A DNA stretch of 64,000 nt, from the sequence record NC_019411.1. One strand, written 5' to 3'. This document shows positions 8,795 through 59,895 of this stretch, in pieces. A program made the translations under genes and the position numbers. Within the stretch, counting starts at the first letter, position 1. Each line of letters opens with the position of its first letter. The notes below the pieces were generated by a model. It searched no databases. It saw only the letters and a list, made by a program, of their open reading frames with translations, and was not told the origin of the DNA.

Positions 8795-8869
8795 GAAAAG
8801 GGCCTCCGGCGTTGTCGTCTAAGGCCCTTCTAGCGAGTCGGTGTCAGGCTGTCAACACATGTCAGCCAA
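8795..8869 (-). promoter_or_regulatory. Promoter cassette P3
   Basis: TTGGC-9-TTGACA-17-TAGAAG-7-GACGACAACG-CCGGAGG-ATG. Confidence 0.9.
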
Positions 8870-8871
8870 GA

Positions 8872-9483
8872 TCAGGCGGCGTTCGTCACCAGGGTTTCCA
8901 GGCGATCAAAGCCCAGATCGAGGCGACCCCACATCGACGAGGGCGTATGCGGCTTGACCACCTCGGTGAACCGCGCGCGCTCCTTCAGATACATGCGGGC
9001 CATGGGGATGTTCGGCTGGCCGGTCGCCGGGTCCTTGATCGAGGCCTCGACATTGGCGATCCGGTCGGCGAGCTTGAGGATGCAGGCCTTGGGGTGCTCG
9101 CCCAGCTTGCGATAGATGTCCTCGTTGCGGGCCTTGCGGTTGGGGCCGATGCCCGAGACCGCCCAGACCAGCGCCGCGACGTCCTCGCCGAACTTTTCCT
9201 TGATCATCTCCAGCCGCTGCTCGGGCGTCATGTCGAGATGGGTGTCCTCGATCACGTCGTGCAGCTTGGCGGCGGCCGTCCAGGTAAAGCCCAGGAAGCC
9301 GTAGTCGTCGAGGATGCGCTCGACCTTCTGGAGATGGTAGAGATAGGGCTGGCCGGCGTACTGCTGGTCCCCGTGGGCGGCGATGGCGAATTCCGTCGGG
9401 TCTTCCTGGCGCAGCGGCGCGCCCGGCGCCGTCGGAAGGCCCGTCAGGATGGAGGCGAGTTGGTCGAGCGAGGCGTCAGACAT
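8872..9483 (-). CDS. RelA/SpoT-type HD-domain hydrolase (small alarmone hydrolase/Mesh1-like)
   Basis: FAIAAHGDQ..AGQPYLYHL..V...AAAKLHDVIEDT...KLADRIAN. Confidence 0.85.
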   Translation of the reverse strand: MSDASLDQLASILTGLPTAPGAPLRQEDPTEFAIAAHGDQQYAGQPYLYHLQKVERILDDYGFLGFTWTAAAKLHDVIEDTHLDMTPEQRLEMIKEKFGEDVAALVWAVSGIGPNRKARNEDIYRKLGEHPKACILKLADRIANVEASIKDPATGQPNIPMARMYLKERARFTEVVKPHTPSSMWGRLDLGFDRLETLVTNAA

Positions 9484-9889
9484 GGGGCTTCTCGGAGATC
9501 GGGGTGAAGACTTCCAGGCCGTCGACGATCTGCATCAGATGCGTCGGCGGGTGGGCGGGATTGTAGCGGATGTAGCCGGCGAGGCCGCCGTCGATCATCG
9601 CCCCGCCCCGCTCCTTGTAGTCGTGCCGGAAGCGCGAGACCAGGAATGAGCCGTCGGGCATCTCGATCGCCGAGAACTGGGCCTGTCGGATCGAGGCCGC
9701 CGAGGTGATGTAGAGCCCGCCGCCTAGCGGATGGGTGAAGAGCCCGAAGTAGTTGTCGTGGCCCTTCTCGCGGTCCGGCGTCTCGGTGTAGAAGACGTGG
9801 AACGGCCCCTCGCGGTCGGGCAGGTCGTAATAGCCGACGTACTTGGCTTTGTAGTGCTTTTCGGCCCCGGCGATGTTGATGCTGCTCAT
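9476..9889 (-). CDS. Hypothetical protein (MSSINIAG...)
   Basis: ATGA overlap; SRFRHDY...IDGG.GY motif of a common phage family. Confidence 0.75.
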   Translation of the reverse strand: MSSINIAGAEKHYKAKYVGYYDLPDREGPFHVFYTETPDREKGHDNYFGLFTHPLGGGLYITSAASIRQAQFSAIEMPDGSFLVSRFRHDYKERGGAMIDGGLAGYIRYNPAHPPTHLMQIVDGLEVFTPISEKPHV

Positions 9890-10389
9890 GCGACCCTCAG
9901 GAATTCTCCCCAGGCGGGGAGGGCGTGCTTCAGATAGGCGGCGTGCGCCTCGTCCGGCGTCGTGTAGCACCCGAGATAGCGGTACACCCCGTTGATCGTG
10001 ACCTGGGCCTGGAACGGCTTCGTCTTGCTCCGGCTCTTGGTCACGCCCTTGGGAAGCGCGCCGACGTTCGGGCGGTTCACGAGGTTCTGGGACCGCGTCG
10101 CCTTCCGGAGGTTCTTGATCCGATTGTTGCGCCGGTTCAAGTCCTTGTGGTCGACGTCGTGATCGGGCATCACCCCGTGATGGATCGCCCAGGCCACCTT
10201 GTGGGCGGCGATCTGAATTCGCCGGCCGCCATAGGAGACCTTCATCACCCGATAGCCGTCCTTGGTCACCGAGCCGCAGCGCTTGCGGGACTTGGAGCCC
10301 CGCACGGTGATGGCGCCGGTGGCGGGATCGTACTTGTAGCGCGCCCGGAGGAAGTCGACCGGGATCGAAAACTCTGCATCCCCCGACAT
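9886..10389 (-). CDS. HNH endonuclease with C-terminal AP2 domain (homing-endonuclease type)
   Basis: AHKVAWAIHHG...VDHKDLNRRNNRIKNLR..T.SQN; KGV...FQAQVTING..RYLGCY.T..EAHAAY. Confidence 0.88.
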   Translation of the reverse strand: MSGDAEFSIPVDFLRARYKYDPATGAITVRGSKSRKRCGSVTKDGYRVMKVSYGGRRIQIAAHKVAWAIHHGVMPDHDVDHKDLNRRNNRIKNLRKATRSQNLVNRPNVGALPKGVTKSRSKTKPFQAQVTINGVYRYLGCYTTPDEAHAAYLKHALPAWGEFLRVA

Positions 10390-10393
10390 AGGA

Positions 10394-10633
10394 TCAGTCC
10401 TTCTGGGCGTGCCGCTTGAAGAGGAGGTAGAAGCCGTAGGCGACGAGCACCGGAATCCAGAGCAGGATCAGGGCCACGGTCTGACCGAGGGTCATGAGGA
10501 AGAACGCGGCCTTCCAGTCGTTGTTGTACTGGTTGTCGCGCACCGCATGGACTTTCGGATAGTCGATCGCATAGCGGTAGCCGGCGCGCGCGAGGCCCAG
10601 AAGCAGGCCGATGATGAAGTAGAGATCGGTCAT
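10394..10633 (-). CDS. Small membrane protein
   Basis: Two hydrophobic segments. Confidence 0.7.
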   Translation of the reverse strand: MTDLYFIIGLLLGLARAGYRYAIDYPKVHAVRDNQYNNDWKAAFFLMTLGQTVALILLWIPVLVAYGFYLLFKRHAQKD

Positions 10634-10636
10634 GGC

Positions 10637-10903
10637 TTACTTCTCCGAGGCCTCGATCATCTTCTGGGCGCCGGCGTTCAGCTTCTTGCGCAGGAGCCAG
10701 AAGACCGGAATCCAGAACAGGGCGAACAGGCTGGCGGGCCAGAGGGCGCCGAGGACCAGACCGGTGATGAAGACGAACCAGCCGTAGATGCCGAATTCGT
10801 CGAGGGTCCTGATCCCCATCTCGCGGACGAAGGTCGGGACGATGGTCGCGCCGGCGACCCACCATCCGATGGCCAGGAAAAGGCCGACGAGCCAGTAGAA
10901 CAT
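10637..10903 (-). CDS. Small membrane protein
   Basis: Two hydrophobic segments. Confidence 0.7.
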   Translation of the reverse strand: MFYWLVGLFLAIGWWVAGATIVPTFVREMGIRTLDEFGIYGWFVFITGLVLGALWPASLFALFWIPVFWLLRKKLNAGAQKMIEASEK

Positions 10904-11205
10904 CAGGGTTGTTCCTTCTCAAGACCCACGTCGGGGTCGTATTTCAGGATGACGCCGTCCTCGTTCCGGTGCTCCATCAGCGGGAACCCCGAGACGAACT
11001 GCGGCACGAAGAGGTCGCGTCGCGGCTGCTGGAGCCAGATCAGGCCGGTCTCGGCGACCACCGCGCGCTCGGCCGGGGTAAGCTCCCAGCAGGAGATCAC
11101 GCCCTCGGGGCCGGTGTAGGTGTGGAGGGGCGCGACCGTGTCCTCGTTCCCCGGAGCGGGGTTCCAGACCTTGTTGGCGCCGGCGAAATTACGAGGAACG
11201 GCCAT
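10903..11205 (-). CDS. Hypothetical protein
   Basis: ISCWELTPAERAVV..TG.IWL motif of a phage family. Confidence 0.7.
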   Translation of the reverse strand: MAVPRNFAGANKVWNPAPGNEDTVAPLHTYTGPEGVISCWELTPAERAVVAETGLIWLQQPRRDLFVPQFVSGFPLMEHRNEDGVILKYDPDVGLEKEQP

Positions 11206-11440
11206 CGGCGTTCTTGCCCTTGTTGACGAAATACCAGATCGCCAGGGCGATCAGGAAGCCGGGGACGCCCAGCGGCCATGCGATGGCCATGCCCAGCGCG
11301 GTGAAGAAGCCCAGCGCCACCGCGCCCGCCGCGTCGGCGAGCTTCAGGACCCCGGTGCGGCTTTCGTGCTTGATCGTCCAGATGGTCGCGACAAGGCCGC
11401 TGACCACGCCCAGGATGATCGAGAAGATGATGTAATTCAA
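11189..11440 (-). CDS. Small membrane protein (TTG start, MNYIIFSIILG...)
   Basis: TTG overlaps upstream TGA; two hydrophobic segments. Confidence 0.65.
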   Translation of the reverse strand: MNYIIFSIILGVVSGLVATIWTIKHESRTGVLKLADAAGAVALGFFTALGMAIAWPLGVPGFLIALAIWYFVNKGKNADGRSS

Positions 11441-11820
11441 AGCAGACCCGCCGCCTGCTTGGCGGCCTCCTTGGCGCGGACCTTGTCGGGAGACAGGCTC
11501 TTCACGCGGTTGATCTCGTCGGCCTCGCAGCCGTCGGCGCTGATGCCGAGATTTTCGCAGAGGGTGTAGAGCGACAGCAGCAGCCCGCCGACCTCTTCCT
11601 TGACCTCGCCGACCGGCCGGCTGTAGGTCCAGTGCGCCTGCCGGATCACGTCCTCCAGGCTCAGGCCCTGGGTCTGGACGAGTTCCATGCACTCCTCCAG
11701 GGTGCGGAAGGCCTGGATGCGCCGGTTGAAGACGCGGCCCGTCAGGACCTCCTCGACCCACTTCCAGCACCACGTCTGGCGCTTGGCCCGGTGCTCATGA
11801 CAGGCGTCGACCTCGGTCAC
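11437..11820 (-). CDS. MazG-like NTP pyrophosphohydrolase
   Basis: RTLEECMELVQ...RPVGEVKEEVGGLLLSL..LC; GTG start with GGAGA SD. Confidence 0.6.
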   Translation of the reverse strand: MTEVDACHEHRAKRQTWCWKWVEEVLTGRVFNRRIQAFRTLEECMELVQTQGLSLEDVIRQAHWTYSRPVGEVKEEVGGLLLSLYTLCENLGISADGCEADEINRVKSLSPDKVRAKEAAKQAAGLL

Positions 11821-11963
11821 GATTTTCTCCAGTCGAACAGCGCCCAGAAGGCTTGGCGGGTGTCCCTGGTCCAGGACCAGGGACGGATCGCCAGGATGGA
11901 AAGGACGAGGGCGGCGGCGAGATAGATCAGCGCCGCCCGCGCCACGATGTCGAGGAATCCCAT
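11817..11963 (-). CDS. 48-aa membrane peptide (MGFLDIVARAALIYLAAALVLSILAIRPW...)
   Basis: Hand translation; fills gap between rtcB and MazG-like gene; GTGA overlap. Confidence 0.6.
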   Translation of the reverse strand: MGFLDIVARAALIYLAAALVLSILAIRPWSWTRDTRQAFWALFDWRKS

Positions 11964-11966
11964 GGC

Positions 11967-13199
11967 CTAGCCCTTCACGCAGAGGACTTGCTTGAGGGTG
12001 TGGACGATGTCCACGAGGTCCTTCTGGGCCTCCATGACCGCGTCGATGTCCTTGTAGGCCATCGGGATTTCGTCGATCACGCCGGCGTCCTTGCGGCACT
12101 CCACGCCCTCGGTGGCCTTGATCTGGTCCTCCAGGGTGAAGGTCGCCTTGGCCTGGGTCCGCGACATCGTCCGGCCCGCGCCGTGCGAGCACGAGCAGAA
12201 CGAGTCCGCGTTGCCCTTGCCGCGCACGATGTAGGACTTGGCCCCCATCGAGCCGGGGATGATCCCGAACTGGTCCTTCTGCGCCGACACCGCGCCCTTG
12301 CGGGTCACGAAGACCCACTCGTCGAAGTGGAATTCCTTCTGGACGTAGTTGTGGTGGCAGTTCACCGCTTCCTTGTCCGTCTTGAACGGCGGCAGGCCCG
12401 ACGCTCGCATGGCCTCCAGGACCCGGACCATCATCATCTCGCGGTTGATCCGCGCGAAGTCCTGGCCCCAGGCGACGGCTTCCACGTAGTCGTGGAACTC
12501 CGGCTCGCCTTCGCAGAGCCAAGCAAGGTCCTTGTCCAGCGGCTTACGCCCGTCACGGCGCAGCATCATCTCCTTGGCCTTCTCGATGAAGATGCGGCCG
12601 ATGGTGTTGCCGACGCCGCGCGAGCCCGAGTGGAGCATCACCCAGACGCGCTGGTCCTCGTCGAGGCAGACCTCGATGAAGTGGTTGCCGCCGCCCAGGG
12701 TGCCCAGTTGGACCACGCTGTTGGCGTTCTTCAGCGCCGGGTACTTCTCGCAGAGCTTGTCGAACCGCGCCTCCAGGCCCGAGTCGACCCACTTGCGCAG
12801 GATCGAGTTGGGGATGCCGCTGCGCCCGTTCCAGCCGCCCGACGGACCCGGCCCGCCGTGCGGGACGGCGTGCTCGATCAGCGAGCGAAGCTTGGCGAGG
12901 CTGTCGGGAAGGTCCGACGCGGTCAGGCTGGTGCGGACCGCCATCATGCCGCAGCCGATGTCGACGCCGACGGCGGCCGGGATGATCGCGCCCTTGGTCG
13001 GGATCACCGAGCCCACGGTCGAGCCGATGCCCATGTGGACATCCGGCATCAGGGCGACATGCGAGTGAATGAAGGGCAGGGCCGCGAGGTTGTGGGCCTG
13101 GACCTGAGCCGGTTGCTCGAAGTTCACGCCGCGAACCCAGGCCTTGATCACCCCGCCATTCCAGCCGTTGATCTCTTCGTAGTGGGTCTCGGCGGACAC
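11967..13199 (-). CDS. rtcB: RtcB RNA 2',3'-cyclic phosphate ligase
   Basis: ALMPDVHMG.G..VG, VGVDIGCGM, GTLGGGNHFIE, HSGSRG.G, HHNY, RKGA, IIPGSMG, SHGAGR.MSR, DEIP.AYKDI. Confidence 0.97.
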   Translation of the reverse strand: MSAETHYEEINGWNGGVIKAWVRGVNFEQPAQVQAHNLAALPFIHSHVALMPDVHMGIGSTVGSVIPTKGAIIPAAVGVDIGCGMMAVRTSLTASDLPDSLAKLRSLIEHAVPHGGPGPSGGWNGRSGIPNSILRKWVDSGLEARFDKLCEKYPALKNANSVVQLGTLGGGNHFIEVCLDEDQRVWVMLHSGSRGVGNTIGRIFIEKAKEMMLRRDGRKPLDKDLAWLCEGEPEFHDYVEAVAWGQDFARINREMMMVRVLEAMRASGLPPFKTDKEAVNCHHNYVQKEFHFDEWVFVTRKGAVSAQKDQFGIIPGSMGAKSYIVRGKGNADSFCSCSHGAGRTMSRTQAKATFTLEDQIKATEGVECRKDAGVIDEIPMAYKDIDAVMEAQKDLVDIVHTLKQVLCVKG

Positions 13200-13204
13200 G
13201 GCGG

Positions 13205-13265
13205 GCTCCTTCTGTGGTGTCGTGATTTACGACTTTTGACCATGCTCCTCGGACGGTGTCAACAC
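13205..13265 (-). promoter_or_regulatory. Promoter cassette P4 (rtcB), variant
   Basis: GTG-TTGACA-17-TCAAAA; leader ACGACACCACAGAAGGAG. Confidence 0.6.
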
Positions 13266-13433
13266 TTCTTCAACGGCGGTGATCTGAATTTGCAGCAGAC
13301 TGGCCGCCGGGTGGCTAGGCGGAAGAAGGGCCTCGGCCTGTTTCATGGCGTCCAGGGTGTCTTCCAACGCGGCGCGGAAGGTGTTGCGCTGCTCGGTGGT
13401 GGCGCGGACGGCGGAGGGAAATTCGAAGATCAT
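13227..13433 (-). CDS. Hypothetical protein
   Basis: Short ORF; 3' end contains P4. Confidence 0.6.
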   Translation of the reverse strand: MIFEFPSAVRATTEQRNTFRAALEDTLDAMKQAEALLPPSHPAASLLQIQITAVEEVLTPSEEHGQKS

Positions 13434-13456
13434 GGGATCACCTTGAGGGGTACGCT

Positions 13457-13495
13457 AAAACGAAAAACGCCGGCGAGGATGGCTCGCCGGCGTTT
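13457..13495 (-). terminator. Rho-independent terminator
   Basis: 13-bp IR AAACGCCGGCGAG-5 nt-CTCGCCGGCGTTT followed by TTTTTCGTTTT on minus strand. Confidence 0.88.
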
Positions 13496-13527
13496 CCTAG
13501 TCCAGGGCGGGGCCTAGAGCCGCCGCC

Positions 13528-15728: not shown

Positions 15729-15734
15729 GGAGGT

Positions 15735-15790
15735 CTCCTTCGTTGTCGTCGGGCGTGACTTCTAGTTGGGTTCCTGGAGGCTGTCAACAC
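15735..15790 (-). promoter_or_regulatory. Promoter cassette P5
   Basis: GTG-TTGACA-17-TAGAAG-8-GACGACAACGAAGGAG-ATG. Confidence 0.9.
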
Positions 15791-16052
15791 TTTCGCTCAC
15801 CGGCGCGGCGCCGTAGTGCGCGACCAGGACAAGCCGGGCGCCGCAGGCGACCAGCGCGCCGCGCGCGTCGTAGATCAGCCGTCCGGCCTCCTCGCCGTTC
15901 TTGTCCAGGATGATGGCCTCCCTGGCGTAGGTCGGCTTGCCGCTCTTGCCCCGCTGGATGCGGATCGGAGGATCATCCGTGCCGCGCTTGGTGTTGCGGT
16001 CGATGACCTGCCGGTTGATGTTGAGGACGCAGGTCTTGCGGGTGATCTTCAT
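15762..16052 (-). CDS. Hypothetical protein (MKITRKTCVLNINRQVI...)
   Basis: Conserved phage family; stop codon is the TAG of the P5 -10. Confidence 0.75.
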   Translation of the reverse strand: MKITRKTCVLNINRQVIDRNTKRGTDDPPIRIQRGKSGKPTYAREAIILDKNGEEAGRLIYDARGALVACGARLVLVAHYGAAPVSESVDSLQEPN

Positions 16053-17775: not shown

Positions 17776-17781
17776 GATCGG

Positions 17782-17847
17782 CTCCTCTCGCTGTCGTGAG
17801 GGAGCTTGTACGGGCTCACGCCGATGCTGTCAACACTCTAACGCCAA
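17782..17847 (-). promoter_or_regulatory. Promoter cassette P6
   Basis: TTGGC-9-TTGACA-17-TACAAG-7-ACGACAGCGAGAGGAG-ATG. Confidence 0.85.
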
Positions 17848-17857
17848 CAAAGAATCG

Positions 17858-21083: not shown

Positions 21084-21151
21084 CTCCTCTGCGGTTGTCG
21101 TCGCCCGCCTCTTAGGCCAAGGCCGAAGCCTTGTCAACACATTCAAGCCAA
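21084..21151 (-). promoter_or_regulatory. Promoter cassette P7
   Basis: TTGGC-9-TTGACA-17-TAAGAG-6-GACGACAACCGCAGAGGAG-GTG. Confidence 0.88.
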
Positions 21152-23031: not shown

Positions 23032-23096
23032 CTCCTTCGTTGTCGTCATGCGGCTTCTAGGGCGACTTTACCGGATTGTCAACACATTCCAGCCAG
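23032..23096 (-). promoter_or_regulatory. Promoter cassette P8
   Basis: CTGGC-9-TTGACA-17-TAGAAG-6-GACGACAACGAAGGAGG-GTG. Confidence 0.9.
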
Positions 23097-24921: not shown

Positions 24922-24925
24922 CAGG

Positions 24926-24991
24926 GCCTCCTCGTTGTCGTCGAGGGGGTTCTAGCCGGCGACCGCGACCTTGTCAACACTCTCGCGCCAG
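24926..24991 (-). promoter_or_regulatory. Promoter cassette P9 (ardC)
   Basis: CTGGC-9-TTGACA-17-TAGAAC-6-GACGACAACGAGGAGG-ATG. Confidence 0.9.
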
Positions 24992-26371: not shown

Positions 26372-27102
26372 GGCTCTCCCCCTGGTGTCGTTTCGGCGCT
26401 TCTAGCCCTCCCAAGCAGAGCCGTCAACACATCAGCGCCACGCCAGACCCAGGATAGGCTCAGGATGAGGTCGCGGTCCTCGTAGGCGGCGCTGCGCCCG
26501 GTGATCACCTTGATCGCCGAGAGCGGGCCAAACCGCCAGAAGATGACCGTGCGCGAGTCGTTACGGCCCGGCAGATGCTCCAGCAGCACGCGGCGCTTGA
26601 TCGCCAAATGTCGCTGCTCCCTGTGGAGGACGAGCGCGACCTTGCGCGTCGGGTCAGACCCGAACCACCGGCGCCAGTAGCCCGGATTGTCGATGTTGTC
26701 GAACAGCCGGCCGATCCGCTTGCTGACGGGGCGAAGCCCAGGCTCGCGCCGGCGCACGCTCAGCGGCGGAAAGGTGCAAGGCGGCCACTCCGGAAGCAGG
26801 CGCAGGCGCAGCCTCCGGAATTCCCACGCCGGCATGGCGTTGTCCTTGGTGTTGTTGCACGCCACGCAGGCCGCCGCCAGATTGCTCTCGTGGTTCGATC
26901 CGCCCTCGGCCCTAGCCTCCAGGTGCTCGATCGTCACCTCGTCGGGCTCCAGCTTGCCACCGCCCCGGCCGATCCGCCGGCGATAGGCCATCTGCCCCGT
27001 GCAATAGGTGCAGAGGCCACCCGCCTCCAGGAAGAGGCGGTGGCGGCGGTTCGGCGCGGCGGGCGGTAGCGGGTCCTGGACCAGCACCTCAGATGAGGAC
27101 AT
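26368..27102 (-). CDS. HNH endonuclease
   Basis: CTYC...TIEHL..R..GGSN..SNLAAAC..CN..K. Confidence 0.85.
   Translation of the reverse strand: MSSSEVLVQDPLPPAAPNRRHRLFLEAGGLCTYCTGQMAYRRRIGRGGGKLEPDEVTIEHLEARAEGGSNHESNLAAACVACNNTKDNAMPAWEFRRLRLRLLPEWPPCTFPPLSVRRREPGLRPVSKRIGRLFDNIDNPGYWRRWFGSDPTRKVALVLHREQRHLAIKRRVLLEHLPGRNDSRTVIFWRFGPLSAIKVITGRSAAYEDRDLILSLSWVWRGADVLTALLGRARSAETTPGGEP
26376..26441 (-). promoter_or_regulatory. Promoter cassette P10 (ACP), inside HNH 3' end
   Basis: GTGGC-9-TTGACG-17-TAGAAG-ACGACACC-GGGGGAG-GTG. Confidence 0.75.
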
Positions 27103-31744: not shown

Positions 31745-31811
31745 CCTCCTTGTTGTCGTCGAGGATGGCTTCTAGCCGGCCCAGGTCACGTTGTCAACAC
31801 TCGACAGCCAA
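31745..31811 (-). promoter_or_regulatory. Promoter cassette P12
   Basis: TTGGC-9-TTGACA-17-TAGAAG-8-GACGACAACAAGGAGG-ATG. Confidence 0.9.
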
Positions 31812-34169: not shown

Positions 34170-34425
34170 AGGTGATCCTGTACGGGAGCCCGCCGACGCA
34201 GATTTTCCCGCGTCGGCCGTCGGCGGTGGTGAAGCGGAAGCCCTGGCGGCTCTTGGTGCCGGCGCAGGACCACCATGCGCGGTGGAAGCTGACGACCTCG
34301 ACGCCGGTGTCGCGCTCGACCAGATGTCGAGCATGACGTCCCTCCCAGGTGTAGGCCCAGACCCCGATGGCGAAGAAGACCAGAGTCAGGGAGCCATAGA
34401 CGGCCCCTTTGACATAGTCCTCCAT
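34156..34425 (-). CDS. Membrane-anchored hypothetical
   Basis: N-terminal TM helix; C..C pair. Confidence 0.65.
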   Translation of the reverse strand: MEDYVKGAVYGSLTLVFFAIGVWAYTWEGRHARHLVERDTGVEVVSFHRAWWSCAGTKSRQGFRFTTADGRRGKICVGGLPYRITYGRD

Positions 34426-34802
34426 CAGGCCGCCACGAGCCCGGTGATCACGTCGGTGACGATGCGACGCTTCTCGGCCGGCATGCCCGCCAGCGCCAGG
34501 ATCGTCTTGGCGCCGATCTCGGCGACGGCGGTCTCGACGTCGGCCCGGCCGTCGGTCAGGAACGCCGGATCGTCGACCGGCGGATAGAAATGCCCGATGT
34601 CCTTCTTCAGGAACTGGGCCGCCTCATAGAGCTTCGAGGACGAGATGCGGTTATGCCCGCGCTCGTATTTCTGGACCTGCTGGAAGGTCACGCCGATCGC
34701 CTCGGCGAGTTGGCCTTGCGAGAAGCCGGCCGTCTTGCGGGTGTCGCGCAGCTTGCGCCCCACATAGACGTCGACGGGGTGCGGGGTCTTGTCGTCAGCC
34801 AT
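34425..34802 (-). CDS. XRE-family HTH transcriptional regulator (alphaproteobacterial type)
   Basis: PHPVDVYVGRKLR..R...G.SQ..LA..IGVTFQQVQKYERG.NRIS.SKL. Confidence 0.92.
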   Translation of the reverse strand: MADDKTPHPVDVYVGRKLRDTRKTAGFSQGQLAEAIGVTFQQVQKYERGHNRISSSKLYEAAQFLKKDIGHFYPPVDDPAFLTDGRADVETAVAEIGAKTILALAGMPAEKRRIVTDVITGLVAA

Positions 34803-36066: not shown

Positions 36067-36136
36067 CCTCCTTCTGTCGTTGTGTCGACATAAGCTCTAG
36101 CCGTGGTTTTCCGGCCTGTCAACACACAACCGCCAA
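36067..36136 (-). promoter_or_regulatory. Promoter cassette P13
   Basis: TTGGC-9-TTGACA-17-TAGAGC; leader GACACAACGACAGAAGGAGG. Confidence 0.85.
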
Positions 36137-38323: not shown

Positions 38324-38745
38324 GCGGACGCCGCCGCGCCGGCCGGCGTCAAGCCGTAGATGGTGGGGCCGCGCGGCGACTTGCCGAGCGCGACCACTTC
38401 CAGATAGCCCATATTATTCAAAGCCTTGGCTGTTTCATGATCGGGGTGATCGTTGAAGACGTTGAGGCGCCCGCCCTCGCCCATCGCCTGGGCGGCGCGC
38501 AGAAGACTCGCCTCGGCTTCGGTCAGGGTGACCAAGGCGACGTCCTCCAGCGCCACGTCGATCACGCAGGTCTGACCCTGGTGAACGAACTCGATGATCG
38601 CCAGCCGGCGATAGGTCCCCGGCAGGACCGCGAGGCAGACGCCTCGGACCTCGACCTTCTGGCGGGCGGTGATCGGGAGATAGAGGCTCGTCTTGACGGC
38701 CTTGCCCTTGAGGGACAGATGCTCGTGCGTCGCCAGCGGGATCAT
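38320..38745 (-). CDS. Hypothetical protein with C-terminal winged-helix-like segment
   Basis: LT.AE..LL...AKALNNMGYL...YGLTPAG. Confidence 0.65.
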   Translation of the reverse strand: MIPLATHEHLSLKGKAVKTSLYLPITARQKVEVRGVCLAVLPGTYRRLAIIEFVHQGQTCVIDVALEDVALVTLTEAEASLLRAAQAMGEGGRLNVFNDHPDHETAKALNNMGYLEVVALGKSPRGPTIYGLTPAGAAASA

Positions 38746-38987
38746 GGCTCGACCTTCCGGACAGTGTAGGAGAATTCGTCGTGGACGCGACCGTCGAAAC
38801 TAGCCTCGTAGCCGGGGCCGAGTTCGGCCAGGATGCGCGCCTCGATCTCGGCGAAGTCGATGTTCGCCATCGCCTGTTCGGCCGCCCGCATCTGCTGGAG
38901 GAAGCCGTCCTTGATCTGGCGCCCCGCCTCGGTGCGGATCGGGATGTTCTGGATCGGCGGCTCGGATTTCGACAGACGCTCGCCCAT
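38742..38987 (-). CDS. Miniature family-A DNA polymerase palm-like protein (81 aa)
   Basis: [28 protein letters not shown] ~ Pol I [40 protein letters not shown] ~ motif A ADYSQIELRIMA; RVHDEF ~ motif C QVHDEL; coupled on both sides (TGATG, ATGA). Confidence 0.75.
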   Translation of the reverse strand: [81 protein letters not shown]

Positions 38988-39535
38988 CAGGCCCTCCGGC
39001 GATAGACCCGCACCGGGCGGGTGGGGAGGCGTTTCTCGGGCGGCTTGTAGGCGACCAGGGCATGGCTGATGCAGTAGACGCCTGCCTCGGCGCGGCACCC
39101 GCAATGGCCAAAGTCCGGCGAGTTCGGGTCGCCATAGGGCCAGCGGCACATTCCGCGCTTGAGTTCGGCCGTCGCGAACAGCCGCGCCGGGCGCGGCGGG
39201 ATGACCGCCGTTCCTTCGGGGACCAGGGCGAGCTTGGGCTTGGCCGGCGGAGCGGGCTTTTCGACCTTCTTGGGCTTGCGCGCCGTGGCCTTCTTGACCT
39301 TGCGGACCTGGATGCCCAGGCCGCGCGTCTTCTTGCGGCGGGCGGTCGGAGGCGGAACCTTCTCGCCCAGTTCGCCGGCGGCCTTCAGTCGGTCGGCCTT
39401 GCCGCAGACGGCGCTCTTGGTGCGCGGCACGCTCAGGCGCTGACCGATCTCCTTGGTCCCGACCGGCTCCGCCCAGAGCTTCTTGAGCAGGGCGATGTCC
39501 TCGTCCGGCCAGTCGGAATTCCGCTTCTTCACCAC
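38987..39535 (-). CDS. gcrA: GcrA cell-cycle regulator homologue
   Basis: W.DE.I..LKKLW......EI...L....TKSAV.GK..RL; C-terminal EL....CRWP.GDP...DF..CG.......YC..H...AY. Confidence 0.92.
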   Translation of the reverse strand: MVKKRNSDWPDEDIALLKKLWAEPVGTKEIGQRLSVPRTKSAVCGKADRLKAAGELGEKVPPPTARRKKTRGLGIQVRKVKKATARKPKKVEKPAPPAKPKLALVPEGTAVIPPRPARLFATAELKRGMCRWPYGDPNSPDFGHCGCRAEAGVYCISHALVAYKPPEKRLPTRPVRVYRRRA

Positions 39536-39743: not shown

Positions 39744-39772
39744 ACCCTAGAGGAGCGTTCGAGTGTTGACAA
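39744..39772 (-). promoter_or_regulatory. Leftward promoter P14
   Basis: TTGTCA-17-TAGGGT on minus strand, using the first TTGACAA copy backwards. Confidence 0.65.
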
Positions 39773-39806
39773 GCACCAATGTCGCTGGCTTTCGAGTGTT
39801 GACAAG
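39758..39806. repeat. Tandem 16-nt direct repeat TTCGAGTGTTGACAAG x2 at the strand-switch point
   Basis: Identical copies at 39758-39773 and 39791-39806. Confidence 0.9.
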
Positions 39807-41789: not shown

Positions 41790-42044
41790 ATGCTGACCAA
41801 GGACGAGATCACCTTCGCGGGCCTGATCAAGGCCATGGAGGACGCCCGACGCACCGCCAAGGCGGCGGGCGATCTCGTCAGCACGGCCGAGATCGACCGC
41901 TGGTTCAAGGAACACGCGCCGATCATCCGGGAGGTCCGCGACAAAGCCGAGGCCGACGAATTCGACGCTGGCGCGAGAGTGTTGACAGCCTCTGAGGAAG
42001 GGGCTAAAGACACCCTCGACGACAGCGAAAGGAGCCTGCCTTGA
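41790..42044 (+). CDS. Hypothetical protein; 3' end carries P16
   Basis: ORF track; AGGA SD. Confidence 0.65.
   Translation: MLTKDEITFAGLIKAMEDARRTAKAAGDLVSTAEIDRWFKEHAPIIREVRDKAEADEFDAGARVLTASEEGAKDTLDDSERSLP
41968..42034 (+). promoter_or_regulatory. Promoter cassette P16
   Basis: CTGGC-9-TTGACA-17-TAAAGA-7-GACGACAGCGAAAGGAG-TTG. Confidence 0.88.
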
Positions 42045-45104: not shown

Positions 45105-45172
45105 CTGGCGCGAAAGTGTTGACAAGGTTCTGGGAACTCCTCTATACCCACGCTCGACGACAACGAGAGGAG
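45105..45172 (+). promoter_or_regulatory. Promoter cassette P17
   Basis: CTGGC-9-TTGACA-18-TATACC-7-GACGACAACGAGAGGAG-ATG. Confidence 0.88.
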
Positions 45173-48762: not shown

Positions 48763-48814
48763 TTGACAACACTTTCGCGCCAACATAGAACCGCCCTCGA
48801 CGACAACGAGGAGG
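48763..48814 (+). promoter_or_regulatory. Promoter cassette P18 (upstream element inverted into spacer)
   Basis: TTGACA-17-TAGAAC-7-GACGACAACGAGGAGG-ATG; minus strand of spacer reads TTGGC-9-TTGTCA. Confidence 0.88.
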
Positions 48815-50264: not shown

Positions 50265-50329
50265 CTGGCGTTCTTGTGTTGACAAGGCCGGCGCCGCTGG
50301 CCTAGAACGTCGTGGACGACAACAGGAGG
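50265..50329 (+). promoter_or_regulatory. Promoter cassette P19
   Basis: CTGGC-9-TTGACA-18-TAGAAC-6-GACGACAACAGGAGG-ATG. Confidence 0.88.
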
Positions 50330-54805: not shown

Positions 54806-55296
54806 TGGCGATCTTCGCGCCTGAATACACCTGGGAGGCGATCGGCACCGATGTCGCCGTTGGCCTGACCGAGGCGGTGATCCGGGGCGAGGCCGCGCCG
54901 GTCTGCGTCGGCTCCTCGCTGCACGCCATGGAATTCCACGTCATCTGGCGCGGCGATCTCTACCGGGCCTTCACCGGCATGGGGAGCGATCCCGACTGGA
55001 CCTGCGCCGAGAAGGGCGTGCGGGTCCCCCATCCGCTGGACGGCAAGAAGATCGACGAGATCGAGAAGGACCGGCATCGCGACGAGGAACGCTACCGCCG
55101 CGAGATCGAGACCATGCCCGGCCGGCACCTCTACATCTGCCGTAAGACCGATGACCTCCAGGACATCCTCGCCCGCATCCCGATGGACCTGCGGATGCGC
55201 CACGAGATGTCGAACATGATCACCCTCCTGGCCCGGATGATGCTGGTCCAGAACTCCACCCGCACGCTTTCCCGCTCCAAACTCGACCGGTTCTGA
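54805..55296 (+). CDS. Hypothetical protein
   Basis: TGATG overlap. Confidence 0.7.
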   Translation: MAIFAPEYTWEAIGTDVAVGLTEAVIRGEAAPVCVGSSLHAMEFHVIWRGDLYRAFTGMGSDPDWTCAEKGVRVPHPLDGKKIDEIEKDRHRDEERYRREIETMPGRHLYICRKTDDLQDILARIPMDLRMRHEMSNMITLLARMMLVQNSTRTLSRSKLDRF

Positions 55297-55297
55297 C

Positions 55298-55819
55298 ATG
55301 ACCACCCAACGCCTCGATTTCTCCAGCGACGTCAACTGGCCCCCGAAGGTCGACTTCGATCTCAAGAAGCTGCGCTACGACGTGGCGGTCGAAATCCTGG
55401 AGACCCTGTGGCCCAAGCACCGCCACGACAAGCGCCACGACCTGTCGCTGCTGGGCTCGCTCTGCAAGGTCAAGTTCGGCGCGGCGGGCTTCAAGGCCGA
55501 CGACATCAAGGAGCAGACCCTGGCGGTCATGCGCACGCTCGAAGCGGCCAACTTCGTGCGCAACGACGGCGGCGACTGGCACCTGACGGCGACCGGGGCG
55601 ATCTGGGTCCTGGTGGCCCGGACCGCGCCCTCGGGCTGGGCGACCGAGAGCGCCCTGCTCCACCACATCGAACTGGCGACCTTCCCCGCCGCCGAGATCA
55701 TCTGGGCGGTCGAGTCCTGCCCCTATTTCCACGTCCGCAAGGGAAGCCTGTTCGACGACAAGGTCTTCGATCTCCAGGCCTACCAGCAGCCGCTCGATGG
55801 ATGGAACGGATGGCGCTGA
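55298..55819 (+). CDS. Winged-helix-like protein
   Basis: TL.VMRTLE...FV.....WHLTATG. Confidence 0.6.
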   Translation: MTTQRLDFSSDVNWPPKVDFDLKKLRYDVAVEILETLWPKHRHDKRHDLSLLGSLCKVKFGAAGFKADDIKEQTLAVMRTLEAANFVRNDGGDWHLTATGAIWVLVARTAPSGWATESALLHHIELATFPAAEIIWAVESCPYFHVRKGSLFDDKVFDLQAYQQPLDGWNGWR

Positions 55820-56346
55820 CCCCCGAGGCCTGGGACAGCCTGATTCTCGACCTGCGGACCGCCGCCGAGGACAAGGACCGCGAGGCCTGGGACGACGCCG
55901 TCCAGGCTCTGGAAGCCGCCTTCGATGAGCATGTCGAGGGACCGCTGGAGAGCCATCCCAACACCCTGGCCTGGAAGAAGAGCCTCGAAGAGAAGACGCG
56001 GTTCATGGCCGGCTGGCGCCACTGGGGCGGCGGGGCGCGCGACGTCCCCGACGCCTACCGGGGCGACCCGCACTTCAACCGGGGCCGGGCCGGCGCGGCG
56101 ATCGCCCAGGACATGAGCGCCGTGAAGGACCTTGACGCGTGTCACCATCCGGTCAAGCATCGGATCGCCGGCGGGGATAATCAGGTCCTGCCGCGCCACC
56201 CGGCCGTCTACGGCTCCTACGCGGTCGAAATCTGCCGCCTCTGCCGGGGGTGGACCCTGGTTCAGCACGGGACGCCCCGGTGGCGTCCTGGTCCGTACTA
56301 TGACGCCTACGAGAAGGCGACGCGCGAGGAAGAGGAGCGCTGCTGA
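55810..56346 (+). CDS. Hypothetical protein (MALTPEAW...)
   Basis: Overlap coupling; C-terminal C.H...C..C. Confidence 0.7.
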   Translation: MALTPEAWDSLILDLRTAAEDKDREAWDDAVQALEAAFDEHVEGPLESHPNTLAWKKSLEEKTRFMAGWRHWGGGARDVPDAYRGDPHFNRGRAGAAIAQDMSAVKDLDACHHPVKHRIAGGDNQVLPRHPAVYGSYAVEICRLCRGWTLVQHGTPRWRPGPYYDAYEKATREEEERC

Positions 56347-57041
56347 TGCTCTATGTGTTCGGGGATATCCACGGCCGCCTCGACCTCCTGGAGAAGGCGC
56401 GACACGAAATCCGTGTACGCGGCGACTGCACGCAGATGATCTTCCTCGGGGACTATGTCGATCGCGGTCCCGAGAGCAAGGGCGTCGTCGAGGCCGTGAT
56501 GGCGCTTCAGGCCCAGGGCGAGATCGCCCTGATGGGCAACCACGAGGAAATGATGCTGATCGCCTGTCAGATCAAGTCCTACAACGCCATGTCCAAGCTC
56601 TGGGTGTCGAACGGCGGCAAGCAGACCCTGAAGTCCTACGGGGCCGGCGACAATGCCTGGAACGCCAAATGGGACCTGATCCCCCAGGAGCACGTCGACT
56701 GGCTGGCGCGGCTCAAGCCGATCCACGAGACGCCGGGGCGGGTGTTCGTCCACGCGGGCCTCGCGCCGGGGGTGGCGATCAAGATGCAGGAGGAGGAACA
56801 CCTTCTCTGGATCAGGGACAAGTTCCTCAACGCCTCGGCCGACCAGTTCGAAAAGCACGTCGTCCACGGCCACACCCACACCCATGCGCGCAAGAAGATC
56901 GAAGAGCCCGAGCTTCTCGCGCATCGGACCAACCTCGACACCGGGGCCTTCTACACGGGCGTCCTGGCCGTCGGGGTGTTCGACCCGGACGGCTACGGCG
57001 GACCCGAGGAGGTGCTGTTGATCCGCGAGGACGACGCATGA
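56346..57041 (+). CDS. Calcineurin-like metallophosphoesterase (Ser/Thr protein phosphatase PphA type)
   Basis: GDIHG, LGDYVDRG, LMGNHE, FVHAG, VVHGHT, NLDTGA. Confidence 0.93.
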   Translation: MLYVFGDIHGRLDLLEKARHEIRVRGDCTQMIFLGDYVDRGPESKGVVEAVMALQAQGEIALMGNHEEMMLIACQIKSYNAMSKLWVSNGGKQTLKSYGAGDNAWNAKWDLIPQEHVDWLARLKPIHETPGRVFVHAGLAPGVAIKMQEEEHLLWIRDKFLNASADQFEKHVVHGHTHTHARKKIEEPELLAHRTNLDTGAFYTGVLAVGVFDPDGYGGPEEVLLIREDDA

Positions 57042-57622
57042 TCCCCGACTTCGTCCAGAAGGCTCGCAAGCTCCTGGGCCTCTATGGGGACAAGCCGAAG
57101 GTCAAGCCGGTCGATCCCGCCGCGCCGCTGGGCGGGGCGATCGTCGGCCAGGGCTTCGGCTTCCCAGTCCCGCAGGTCCCTTCCGGGAGCAGCCACGGTG
57201 CCTTGGGCGGCCCTGGCGGCGGATCGATCCACACCGGCTCGGGTCGCGGCGTCATCATGATGGGGGCAGGCGGTGGCGGCTCGGCCCAAATCCTGGTCTA
57301 TAACGGCGCGACGACGACGTGGGCGCCAATGCCCGAGGCCGTGGTCAAGACGGTCGAGAAGCCCAAGACGCGGCCGGGTCTGACGGCGGGAGAGGACGAG
57401 GTCATCACGACCATGGTTCGCTATGGCGATGTCGAACTGGTCCTGGAGCGCGACCGCAGGTTCGCCTTCGTCCGTTTCGGCCTGGAGCTTGCCTATCCCC
57501 GCGTCTCGGGCCGGATGCTCAAGTCCTTGATCAAGAAGGGCTATCTGAAAGCTATCGAGCATGACGAGATGGGCGGGCCGCAGGTGGTGGTGGTCGTGGC
57601 GGGCAAGGTCGCGGTCTGCTGA
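57038..57622 (+). CDS. Hypothetical protein with Gly-rich centre
   Basis: ATGA overlap; C-terminal VSGRMLKSLIKKGYL. Confidence 0.65.
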   Translation: MIPDFVQKARKLLGLYGDKPKVKPVDPAAPLGGAIVGQGFGFPVPQVPSGSSHGALGGPGGGSIHTGSGRGVIMMGAGGGGSAQILVYNGATTTWAPMPEAVVKTVEKPKTRPGLTAGEDEVITTMVRYGDVELVLERDRRFAFVRFGLELAYPRVSGRMLKSLIKKGYLKAIEHDEMGGPQVVVVVAGKVAVC

Positions 57623-57628
57623 ATTTTG

Positions 57629-57693
57629 TTGGCGTTAGAACGTTGACAGCCTCGGCGTGATGTCATAAAAGCCTCCTCGACGACAACGAGGAG
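57629..57693 (+). promoter_or_regulatory. Promoter cassette P20
   Basis: TTGGC-9-TTGACA-17-TAAAAG-7-GACGACAACGAGGAGG-ATG. Confidence 0.9.
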
Positions 57694-57699
57694 GCCCAC

Positions 57700-58119
57700 A
57701 TGGCTTACGCAATTCCGGACCTGAGCACGTTCACGTTCCACGACCCCAAGGTCGAACGGTTCGCCAAGGCGATGATCTCGACGATCGAGACTGCTCAGAC
57801 CATCCTCACGGCCTTCGCCAACGATCTCGCCGACAATCCTCTTCAGGCGTTCGAGCATAGCTACGGCGCCAAGATGGCCGCCGCCCACAGGGACGTCGCC
57901 AAGGGGCTGCTCAACGAGGTTCTCGACGCGCTGCTGCACGGTCAGGACAAGACCTGGGCCTACATCGGCCAGGACCTGCGCGAGCGGCTGATGTATCGCG
58001 TGATCTACGCGGCCTCGAACCCGCCGCGCTCGACCAACGTCGAAGGCAACGACATGGCCCGCTTCGTCCTGCGCGCCGAGGCCGACATGCTCGACCGCAT
58101 GACCAAGAGCCGCTTCTGA
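57700..58119 (+). CDS. Hypothetical protein
   Basis: First gene after P20. Confidence 0.8.
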   Translation: MAYAIPDLSTFTFHDPKVERFAKAMISTIETAQTILTAFANDLADNPLQAFEHSYGAKMAAAHRDVAKGLLNEVLDALLHGQDKTWAYIGQDLRERLMYRVIYAASNPPRSTNVEGNDMARFVLRAEADMLDRMTKSRF

Positions 58120-58433
58120 TGCGGATCGTCGACTTCGCGACGTTCGTGACGCTTCCGGCTGGGACCCTCTACCAGGAGATCGACCAGTACGGGAGCCCCA
58201 TCAGCGCCCTGGCGATCCGCCACGACGTGCTGTTCGACGGCGATCGCCCGTTCGACTTCATCTACGAGGAAATCCTCTACCAGACGGCCGACGGCTTCCT
58301 GGGCGACCCGCCGAAGCTGGCCGAGTTGGGGACCAAGCGCTGGGGGCTCTTCGATGACGAGACCCTGTTCATCGTCTACGAGACGCAGGACCGCGCCCGG
58401 CTGGCCAAGATCATCCTGGGAGACGCCGCATGA
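58119..58433 (+). CDS. Hypothetical protein
   Basis: TGATG overlap. Confidence 0.7.
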   Translation: MRIVDFATFVTLPAGTLYQEIDQYGSPISALAIRHDVLFDGDRPFDFIYEEILYQTADGFLGDPPKLAELGTKRWGLFDDETLFIVYETQDRARLAKIILGDAA

Positions 58434-58651
58434 AGCCGCAGACCCAGAGGACCTTCATCCTGTCCGGCGTGGGCTTCTTCCTCGGCTTCCTGCTGGTGTT
58501 TGGCTTCATGAGCGCCACGCAGGCCTCCTACAACCGAGGCTATCGAGACGCCAAGGCCGACACGCGCCGGGACGAGCCGGCATGCTTCGTCACCGAGCGC
58601 TGCTATCTGGGCCAGGACGCCGACGGGCGGTGGTTCATCGAGCCGAAATAG
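58430..58651 (+). CDS. Small membrane-anchored protein
   Basis: N-terminal TM helix; Y.RGY.DAK. Confidence 0.7.
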   Translation: MKPQTQRTFILSGVGFFLGFLLVFGFMSATQASYNRGYRDAKADTRRDEPACFVTERCYLGQDADGRWFIEPK

Positions 58652-58717
58652 TTGGCGTTCAAGTGTTGCCAAAGCTGATCTGATCAGCTAGAACCCTCGC
58701 CGACGACAACGAGGAGG
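58652..58717 (+). promoter_or_regulatory. Promoter cassette P21
   Basis: TTGGC-9-TTGCCA-17-TAGAAC-7-GACGACAACGAGGAGG-ATG; spacer holds IR AGCTGATC-T-GATCAGCT. Confidence 0.88.
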
Positions 58718-58721
58718 CCCC

Positions 58722-58916
58722 ATGCCGCACCTGAGCAAGACGCCGTTCGACTTCGACTTCACCAGTGACGCTTTGGCGGCAACGCTGGAATTCGAGCGCA
58801 ACACGACCGAGTTCTACCGCTACGAGACAGTCTTCACATCCGGTCGTGCGGCAACTCACGTTCTCGTCATGGAAGAAGACGGGAATTTCGTCGGCTTCGT
58901 CTCGGGTGAAGCCTGA
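58722..58916 (+). CDS. Hypothetical protein
   Basis: First gene after P21. Confidence 0.75.
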   Translation: MPHLSKTPFDFDFTSDALAATLEFERNTTEFYRYETVFTSGRAATHVLVMEEDGNFVGFVSGEA

Positions 58917-59284
58917 TGCAGCACCTCGACCCCCGCATCGGCGTCCTGAACTCGGGCGTCTACTACGCCTTCGTCGACGGCTACGACAAGCCCGAGACGC
59001 GCGGCACGCTCGAAGAGGTCGAGATCGCCCTGGGCCTGCGCGCTGCGAAGCCGGCTCCGACCAAGCGCATCGTCGCCGCCCAGCCGGCCGTCAAGACCTA
59101 CTCGGTCCACATGCGGTTCGAATATCCGGGCTGGAGCTATACCGACGGCATCACCTACGAGGGCATGCTCGGTCGCACGAAGGCCGAAGCGATCCGCAAC
59201 GCCCGCGCCCAGGCCTTTGCCGACGGTCACCTCGGCGTCGGCCAGGGTCGTGTGTGGTTCAAGGCCACGGAAGAGGACGCCTAG
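58916..59284 (+). CDS. Hypothetical protein
   Basis: TGATG overlap. Confidence 0.7.
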   Translation: MQHLDPRIGVLNSGVYYAFVDGYDKPETRGTLEEVEIALGLRAAKPAPTKRIVAAQPAVKTYSVHMRFEYPGWSYTDGITYEGMLGRTKAEAIRNARAQAFADGHLGVGQGRVWFKATEEDA

Positions 59285-59518
59285 ATGAGCCGCATCCGTG
59301 TCATCGACCGCGACGGGTTCATGCAGGGCTGGGTCGACGCCCGCGTCGGCCTGCCGACCTATTCCGGCCCCGTCACCCGCTGGACCGAAAAGGGCTCGTT
59401 CTGGACCACCGGCTCGGACGGCGAGGAGCGCCTGTGGAAGGCCGGTAATCACCAGCCCTGCGTCTACAAGAGCAAGCTCCGCAAGAGCGACATCATCCAC
59501 GAGCGACGGGAGGGCTGA
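59285..59518 (+). CDS. Hypothetical protein
   Basis: GAGGA SD. Confidence 0.7.
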   Translation: MSRIRVIDRDGFMQGWVDARVGLPTYSGPVTRWTEKGSFWTTGSDGEERLWKAGNHQPCVYKSKLRKSDIIHERREG

Positions 59519-59519
59519 C

Positions 59520-59837
59520 ATGGGCCTGCTGAGCATCTATCTGACGGGCGCGGCGCTCACCGGCGTGGCGACGGGCGTCTACCTTTTCAAGTTCCGGGCG
59601 CCCGCGACGCATGAGACCTACACCACCACCTGGGGCTATGTCGAAACCGATAACGTCGCCGAGACCGGCAACCACCTGGGGGCCATCCTCCTGATGGCGC
59701 TCTTCTGGTTCGTCATGGTCCCGATGGCGACCGTCATGTTGCTCTGGCACCTCCTGGTCCGCACCGTCGACAAGGCTTGGCGCCGCCGCACGTCGCGCCG
59801 CGAGAAGACGCACGTCGGCACCCATCGCTATCTGTGA
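59520..59837 (+). CDS. Membrane protein
   Basis: Two hydrophobic segments; GGGAGG SD. Confidence 0.7.
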   Translation: MGLLSIYLTGAALTGVATGVYLFKFRAPATHETYTTTWGYVETDNVAETGNHLGAILLMALFWFVMVPMATVMLLWHLLVRTVDKAWRRRTSRREKTHVGTHRYL

Positions 59838-59852
59838 CCGCCGCCAGCCTCG

Positions 59853-59895
59853 CTGGCTTCAGTGTGTTGACGGCGCGTCGATCGCCCGCTAAGAA
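59853..59895 (+). promoter_or_regulatory. Promoter P22 (no GACGACAAC leader)
   Basis: CTGGC-9-TTGACG-17-TAAGAA. Confidence 0.75.

Follow-up and report, generated by a model that had tools for sequence, protein, structure and literature searches.

In a 64,000-nt stretch of the CcrSwift genome (NC_019411.1, genome positions 124001-188000, 100% identity; hereafter the window, to which positions refer unless the genome is named), many promoters carry the bases TGGC exactly 9 nt in front of a TTGAC-type -35 motif, raising the question of what reads this element and how it acts. CcrSwift is a phiCbK-like Caulobacter jumbo siphophage (Shapirovirus, Dolichocephalovirinae). Phages of the phiCbK type are standard tools of Caulobacter cell biology, and their transcription programme is nearly uncharacterised. 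The papers on phiCbK genomics (PMC3556154), on XRE proteins and TgrL (PMC10688885) and on CtrA in phages report no promoter consensus or operator, and the motif is not described in these or in related phage papers, the search having covered openly accessible literature. The cis-element treated here is real and statistically strong, and apparently it has not been described before. The window holds two arms of small, mainly unannotated genes, which diverge at about position 39750.

An earlier note on this DNA, made from the letters alone, had listed 15 promoters with YTGGC at this fixed distance from the -35 box. The list was borne out: TGGC-N9-TTGAC has 14 exact matches in the window, a 15th site has the -35 sequence TTGCCA, and all 15 fall within 8849-59873. 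A comparison with shuffled sequence, also proposed in the earlier note, placed the motif far above chance (0.32 ± 0.51 matches expected in 100 dinucleotide-preserving shuffles, maximum 2). Across the 123 TTGAC sites of the window, TGGC was enriched at the 9-nt spacing only, with 14 cases against 0-3 at each other spacing between 0 and 30. A pyrimidine precedes TGGC in 14 of the 15 sites, and the intervening 9 nt end in GTG, as had been noted, in 14 of 15, the exception being ACG at 57643. Scanning the whole CcrSwift genome yielded 21 TGGC-N9-TTGMCR sites, 20 of them promoter-like. The promoter-linked sites lie nearly all in the early arms (113-193 kb), with single outlying copies before gp341, a gene close to the transfer RNA (tRNA) genes, and before the helix-turn-helix (HTH) gene gp316. 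In the same whole-genome scan, the terminal repeats were free of copies, and so were the structural and lysis operons except for one copy by the tRNA cluster. The element is restricted to early-type promoters.

The information profile of the aligned sites revealed one contiguous element of 21 bp, Y-TGGC-K-N3-R-W-GTG-TTGACA-R, which spans -49 to -29, is sharply bounded on both sides, with an abrupt 5' edge at -49, and ends proximally in the -35 hexamer. We refer to the whole element as the box and to its portion from -49 to -36 as the arm. Near-invariant positions are TGGC, the W at -39, GTG and the hexamer, and positions -43 to -40 are weakly constrained; allowing for variant copies, the consensus generalises to Y-TGGC-K-N3-R-W-GTG-TTG(A/T)CAA. 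The earlier proposal of a regulator binding site near -48 therefore stands in part: the idea of a regulator site is strengthened by the reverse-complemented arms described below, while a separate site at -48 does not hold, since the element includes the -35 hexamer itself.

The box is the first part of a larger promoter cassette. It is followed by a 17-bp spacer, (GC)TAGAAG, about 8 nt, the leader CGACGACAACGAGGAGG, about 5 nt and the start codon, and there are about 20 repeats of this whole cassette, which runs from -49 to the start codon. The leader begins at about the predicted transcription start (~+1 to +25) and contains the Shine-Dalgarno sequence (for example 24925-24950, minus strand); its portion ACGACAAC occurs 16 times in the window. 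The consensus of the Caulobacter housekeeping sigma factor RpoD (sigma73) is TTGaCgS at -35 and GCtANAWC at -10 (PMC8144410). In comparison, the -35 hexamer is TTGACA/G in 14 of the 15 sites and TTGCCA in one. A TAGAAG-like hexamer, usually after GC, follows the -35 at 17 (15-18) bp in 15 of the 17 sites obtained when the two spacer-side copies described below are included. The boxed promoters are thus predicted to be of the host RpoD type, with -35, spacer and -10 near consensus. Some of them lie wholly within an annotated upstream gene (gp222, gp183), and the TGA stop of gp205 is formed within the -35 hexamer TTGACA (31794-31799). In some intergenic copies, T-rich tracts are found just upstream, at -59 to -50. 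A few promoters carry only the proximal half of the box: besides the copy listed in Table 1, such promoters have their -35 at 6852, 13262 and 29644, all on the minus strand.

Several known promoter types were compared with the box. A sigma54 promoter (TGGCAC-N5-TTGCW) was rejected, as the spacing is 9 rather than 7, the second half reads TTGAC and a sigma70-type -10 is present; the pattern TGGC-N7-TTGC itself occurs 4 times in the window. Neither is the box a classical UP element, A/T-rich and located at -40 to -60: TGGC and GTG are the bases that do not vary, the arm is rich in G+C, and it is not confined to the upstream side, as it also occurs inverted inside the spacer. On both points the earlier note, which had set aside sigma54 and UP elements, is supported. 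The GANTC sites of GcrA/CcrM promoters are present in none of the 17 boxes and in 3 of 17 promoter regions, at varying positions. No CtrA-type TTAA-N7-TTAA exists in the window, and the CtrA sites reported for phiCbK sit in the terminal repeat (CtrA-in-phages paper). A hairpin or cruciform at the -35 was likewise rejected for CcrSwift, because the longest inverted repeat between arm and spacer was no greater than that of permuted partners (3.56 versus 3.70 in CcrSwift, 4.06 versus 3.91 in its relative CcrRogue). Some copies in the Brevundimonas phages Bajun and Kabachok and in a metagenomic phage carry both arms.

A further observation that bears on the nature of the reader is the position of the arm. 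In the promoters described so far (class 1), it lies upstream of the -35. To search for further arms, a matrix was built from -49 to -36 only, so that it is free of -35 information. At a threshold of 12.5 bits it gave 20 matches in the window, where shuffles gave about 3, and TTG(A/T)CA or TTGCCA directly follows 17 of the 20. Arms directly 5' of a TTGWCR core number 16 in the window and 0 in 200 shuffles. Two of the best matches (18.1 and 17.6 bits) run against the direction of transcription, inside the spacers of plus-strand promoters that have no box upstream (class 2). The first reads TTGACA-ACACTTTCGCGCCAACA-TAGAAC, with its -35 at 48763-48768, and the second, at 62453, reads TTGACA-ACACTCTCGCGCCAACA-TAGAAG. 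Their spacers are the reverse complement of the class-1 consensus TGGCGCGAGAGTG, in register with a 7-bp near-palindrome, TTGACAA, that holds the -35. Class-1 promoters have a variable spacer and class-2 promoters a variable upstream flank, so that the arm is retained on one side or the other. A third class-2 copy was found elsewhere in CcrSwift (genome 189073-) and five in CcrRogue, one of these on the leftward arm. Class-2 arms score 16.5-19.2 bits in the two phages, on a par with class 1, and always keep register with the near-palindromic core TTGWCAA. Class-2 spacers, unlike those of class 1, hardly vary among copies and phages. The class-2 copies are not divergent promoters, as the other strand offers no -10 at the right distance.

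At the divergence point (39744-39805), two boxes lie 33 bp apart in the same orientation, one serving a rightward class-1 promoter and the other a leftward, class-2-like promoter of the operon of gp191 and the GcrA-like gene, which is kept in CcrRogue and Bajun. As a separate observation, one arm of 16.0 bits (9843-9856, plus strand) stands without a TTGACA core inside a gene on the opposite strand; it is kept in CcrRogue (137245) and is probably coding conservation rather than a site.

Comparison with related phages indicates that the arm is maintained as DNA. CcrRogue is about 78% identical across the region, and the 95 kb of it that were examined contain 16 TGGC-N9 sites. Eleven of the 12 CcrSwift class-1 promoters with a CcrRogue orthologue keep TGGC. 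Among these 11 pairs, identity was 0.43-0.45 in the 50 bp upstream and 0.58 in the spacer, against 0.75 at -44 to -40, 0.89 at -39 to -36 and 0.92 in the hexamer (0.75-0.93 over the arm as a whole). The twelfth promoter, that of gp149 (57643, genome 181643), is a class-2 promoter in CcrRogue (183465, locus L019); this swap of class at one orthologous gene means that promoter cassettes are exchanged between relatives. The copies embedded in genes use all three reading frames, as the earlier note had it, with the T of TGGC at codon position 2 in gp205, 1 in gp222 and 3 in gp183. Together with the CcrSwift/CcrRogue footprint, this supports its claim that selection acts on DNA and not on protein.

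The box extends well beyond these two genomes. Bajun shows the same consensus, with TGGC or TGTC, and Kabachok has boxed promoters of the same consensus. Brevundimonas phages of 312-357 kb contain exact or at least 95% identical matches of 19-21 nt within -49 to -29, and three exact 21-nt matches span precisely these positions. The early proteins of these phages are 30-55% identical to those of CcrSwift. In IMG/VR, a scan with a 14-base pattern gave, among the matches listed, mostly chance hits; informative were the phiCbK-like contigs and a 225,611-bp contig (loci L040 and L097). In this metagenomic phage, T-rich tracts (-59 to -50) are followed by YGGS-N9-TTGACAA and a different conserved leader, AAACCGGAGTCGCAAATG. 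Long inverted repeats flank some of its -35 sites, and at two places back-to-back promoters share one palindromic -35.

Among bacteria, one genome each of 185,579 species gave 7 matches to the strict consensus, none of them in Caulobacter. Two matches are labelled Brevundimonas. One lies on a 210,414-bp contig of a metagenome-assembled genome (MAG; L141) that encodes homologues of CcrSwift gp103 and of the Holliday-junction resolvase gp100 in the same order, and this contig probably represents the genome of a Dolichocephalovirinae phage and not the host. The other is a single chromosomal copy. Exact copies of the box were found in this Brevundimonas vesicularis chromosome (L142, 3263-3283) and in an unclassified proteobacterial MAG (L139, 3698-3716). 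They share an extra G-T before TGGC and have unrelated flanks in accessory regions, which encode unannotated proteins, a transposase and, nearby, a weak HTH_3 gene. In both cases, another promoter-like TTGAC site follows about 50 bp downstream.

Taken together, the arm inverted in the spacer and the class swap argue for a discrete protein operator rather than an UP-type element of RNA polymerase. As with an operator, the conserved sequence overlaps the -35 and is independent of RNA polymerase geometry. A contact of RNA polymerase that reaches upstream cannot explain an arm in the spacer, and a separate protein recognising arm and core can. Our leading reading, still tentative and given somewhat less than even odds, is that the box is the operator of a sequence-specific, most likely phage-encoded repressor that times or shuts off early transcription. 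Binding, repression and the identity of the protein are predictions from sequence. The protein would cover the -35 from the upstream side in class 1 and from the spacer side in class 2, and once bound it would compete with RNA polymerase. Competition is the simplest action, because the core promoters are near consensus and the box always overlaps the -35. About 20 early promoters could in this way be timed or shut off as one regulon, in which half-box promoters (6852, 13262, 15787, 29644) would be weaker operators that escape more easily.

The earlier note had suggested that an activator or a repressor defines an early regulon. The link to early transcription is plausible: tgrL is an early gene in phiCbK, expressed at 15 min (PMC10688885), and its orthologue lies in the operon of the boxed promoter at 36122 (minus strand). 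In phiCbK, expression of about 41% of the genes reaches its maximum by 15 min and falls afterwards (PMC10688885). An activator, on the other hand, seems unnecessary, because -35, 17-bp spacer and -10 already fit the RpoD consensus.

The phage has three proteins of the XRE/HTH_3 family. By their distribution, the candidate readers would be the XRE/CI-like HTH proteins gp316 (266 aa) and gp275, both with an HTH_3 domain. Both occur throughout the subfamily, in every box-bearing phage examined, with conservation reaching to the Brevundimonas phages, Colossus and CcrPW, and the promoter of gp316 is itself boxed. Proteins similar to gp316, gp275 and TgrL co-occur with the box at 28-47% identity, which is suggestive. 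In phylogenetic profiling, gp228 and gp117 were limited to phages of Caulobacter, and the divergence of GcrA was too great for tblastn. TgrL, the XRE protein that had been put forward in the earlier note, was not borne out as the reader. Using matrices from chromatin immunoprecipitation sequencing (ChIP-seq; S2 Table of PMC10688885), we scored TgrL and the host proteins RtrA, RtrB, CdxA and CdxB (core ACAASC), and the promoter regions did no better than random 100-bp regions. In its best fixed register on the box, the TgrL matrix averaged 0.4 bits, with a maximum of 2.0, of 18.8. The RtrB matrix weakly matches the leader and not the box (several promoters reach 10-13.6 bits, the 95th percentile of random regions being 11.2).

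Several points weigh against a phage repressor. The same consensus is found in phages that share only 30-47% identity in their early proteins, the candidate HTH proteins among them. An identical consensus combined with diverged regulators would be better explained by a host reader that evolves slowly, possibly RNA polymerase. An asymmetric element without internal dyad is unusual for dimeric HTH repressors. Dyad symmetry is typical of operators but not obligatory; here no internal dyad exists beyond TTGKC...GWCAA, and flanking inverted repeats are not enriched in CcrSwift and CcrRogue. TgrL, the sole phage regulator with a measured motif, does not fit. Both the role of the box as a binding site and an early-then-off timing of each promoter are predictions.

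A positive factor that aids RNA polymerase at phage promoters, such as the phage GcrA-like protein or a pre-early protein, is an alternative that we consider unlikely. As its two domains are flexibly linked, GcrA could perhaps accept a binding site upstream or downstream of the -35. A GcrA-family protein is encoded by all box-bearing phages checked (CcrSwift gp192, CcrRogue gp204, Bajun BAJUN_00520), and phiCbK infects swarmer cells, which are without host GcrA (Gill 2012). Host GcrA is a cofactor of sigma70 in which DNA and sigma are bound by separate domains. It binds RNA polymerase and is located at sigma70 promoters (PMC4647560). However, the promoters would need little help, being near consensus, and the lack of GANTC in the box gives no support to the GcrA homologue, the second reader proposed in the earlier note. 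The promoter of the GcrA operon itself carries a variant box, so that the factor would need to precede itself, and the CcrSwift and Bajun proteins are only about 30% identical despite an identical box. In addition, box-type promoters of the metagenomic relative drive the terminase-proximal region, the counterpart of the CcrSwift terminal repeat. In a presumed T5-like entry scheme, that region would be transcribed before any phage protein exists.

The box might instead be intrinsic to RNA polymerase, a G+C-rich analogue of the UP element or an extended -35 read by the C-terminal domain of the alpha subunit or by sigma region 4; we regard this, too, as improbable. It would make early promoters very strong in several host genera. 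The strict spacing to the -35 speaks for it, as does the identity of the consensus in Caulobacter and Brevundimonas phages, for RNA polymerase is conserved and the phage proteins are not. The T-rich tracts that often stand just upstream, in intergenic copies and in the metagenomic relative, point the same way, as does the GTG at -38 to -36 found even in promoters without TGGC. Against it stands the class-2 spacer, which is filled by the reversed arm and is more conserved than any class-1 spacer. The arm, moreover, is G+C-rich, unlike UP elements. A motif search over 1,666 host start sites (PMC4287350) recovered TTG and -10 motifs and no others, none of the host RpoD sites (Zhou 2015 list) has a class-2-type spacer, and a consensus copy is present in no Caulobacter genome scanned (one genome per species).

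That a conserved host transcription factor or nucleoid protein couples early transcription to the state of the host is doubtful to a still greater degree. In its favour, phages of two host genera share an identical consensus although their proteins are divergent, exact copies with unrelated flanks sit in the B. vesicularis chromosome and the proteobacterial MAG, and host XRE factors promote phiCbK production (PMC10688885). A host reader fits poorly with 7 matches in 185,579 genomes, none from Caulobacter and one of the Brevundimonas matches probably a phage contig. Nor do the matrices of RtrA, RtrB, CdxA, CdxB and TgrL fit, and the box has no CtrA site or GANTC.

Duplication or gene conversion has been proposed for the promoter-stem-loop modules of T4-type phages. 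A similarity without any reader, a by-product of duplication or gene conversion of the promoter-leader cassette, would agree with the roughly 20 repeats of the whole cassette and with cassettes that move, as the class swap between phages indicates, but it is highly improbable, as among paralogues TGGC and WGTG stay constant and the bases separating them do not, the arm is retained in orthologues whose flanks and spacers have diverged, and the box is kept in a distant phage family with a different leader.

The repressor-operator reading can be set beside known systems. The operator-bearing phage early promoter is a known kind of system, and on this reading the present element would be a form of it. 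The closest likeness is mycobacteriophage L5 (Cluster A), whose repressor gp71, with its operators and stoperators, was reportedly described by Brown et al. in 1997. L5 has tens of copies, distributed over its genome, of one asymmetric site of about 13 bp, which contains a TTGACA-like sequence and overlaps the -35 at the early promoter, and gp71 alone silences many transcription units, as a single reader is proposed to do here. L5 is temperate, however, and most of its stoperators lie off promoters, in fixed orientation, and block elongation. Every CcrSwift box, in contrast, is at a promoter, is 21 bp long and occurs in both orientations about the -35, and its reader is putative. In lambda and P22, the CI and Cro operators also overlap the hexamers of early promoters used by host RNA polymerase, and the XRE/HTH_3 regulators are made early. 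Their operators are 17-bp dyads at two or three promoters, whereas CcrSwift has an asymmetric element at about 20 promoters and is a phage without integrated lysogeny. T4 early promoters and Escherichia coli UP elements share with the box a conservation that extends upstream beyond the -35 at fixed spacing, but UP elements are A/T-rich and upstream only, unlike the arm. GcrA/CcrM promoters with GANTC are likewise of the sigma70 type, and a phage GcrA homologue is encoded beside the divergent early promoters; the CcrSwift box lacks GANTC and its promoters do not look activator-dependent. The leader CGACGACAACGAGGAGG in turn resembles the start-associated sequences (SAS/ESAS) of Cluster K mycobacteriophages in being a short conserved sequence with a ribosome-binding site before many genes; this likeness concerns the leader, not the TGGC box.

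In CcrSwift, the regulon delimited by the box comprises about 20 promoters, and three grades of promoter are predicted from it, namely those with a full upstream box, those with the box in the spacer and those with a half box. The box also supplies both the exact bases to mutate and a short list of possible readers. A reader that is a repressor would explain early shut-off and perhaps episomal persistence. Dolichocephalovirinae were recently reported as episomal pseudolysogens in several host genera (PMC12195562), and a regulon-wide early operator therefore merits testing. A bolder form of the repressor reading, which we think unlikely, is that one regulator reading this mirror-usable box silences essentially all early promoters of the Dolichocephalovirinae and is the switch behind episomal pseudolysogeny; the asymmetric operator would then work from either side of the palindromic -35 core. 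With RNA polymerase as the reader, no G+C-rich upstream promoter element would have been described for Alphaproteobacteria before this one. In both cases, these are compact, strong and portable promoters for Caulobacter and Brevundimonas.

Table 1. Boxed promoters and associated genes in the CcrSwift window. PWM, arm score in bits (position weight matrix).
Feature	Position	Strand	PWM	Remarks
Class-1 box, gp256 promoter	8849..8869	-	15.6	arm upstream of -35 TTGACA
Class-1 box, gp238 promoter	17827..17847	-	20.7	
Class-1 box, gp231 promoter	21131..21151	-	19.9	
Class-1 box, promoter of gp227 + gp228 operon	23076..23096	-	17.4	gp228 winged-helix
Class-1 box, promoter of gp223	24971..24991	-	16.7	in gp222 3' end; gp223 anti-restriction gene
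Class-1 box, gp218 promoter	26421..26441	-	13.0	-35 TTGACG
Class-1 box in gp205 3' end	31791..31811	-	17.9	
Class-1 box, gp196-gp197-gp198 operon promoter	36116..36136	-	16.3	gp198 tgrL orthologue
Class-1 box, gp190 promoter	39785..39805	+	18.7	first rightward promoter at divergence point
Class-1 box, gp182 promoter	41968..41988	+	16.7	within annotated gp183
Class-1 box, gp176 promoter	45105..45125	+	17.2	
Class-1 box, gp166 promoter	50265..50285	+	16.4	
Class-1 box, gp149 promoter	57629..57649	+	14.2	ACG for GTG
Class-1 box, gp146 promoter	58652..58672	+	19.7	-35 TTGCCA
Class-1 box, upstream of gp142	59853..59873	+	16.7	-35 TTGACG; without typical leader
Class-2 copy, gp170 promoter	48763..48783	-	18.1	arm fills spacer -28..-15 of + promoter
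Class-2 copy, gp140 promoter	62453..62473	-	17.6	in spacer of + promoter
Leftward gp191/GcrA-like operon promoter	39744..39772	-		-35 TTGTCA (39772-39767), arm variant GAGC, -10 TAGGGT (39749-39744)
Half-box promoter	15773..15793	-		RW-GTG-TTGACA kept, GTGA for TGGC; identical in CcrRogue
gp198, tgrL orthologue	34425..34802	-		XRE HTH_3 protein; identity of primer sequences to phiCbK tgrL
gp192, GcrA-family protein	38987..39535	-		PF07750, E = 5e-25

Adjoining the GcrA-like gene is gp193 (38742-38987, minus strand), an 81-aa fragment whose match to the family A DNA polymerase model is limited to residues 120-170; it may represent a small domain protein or the remnant of a gene.

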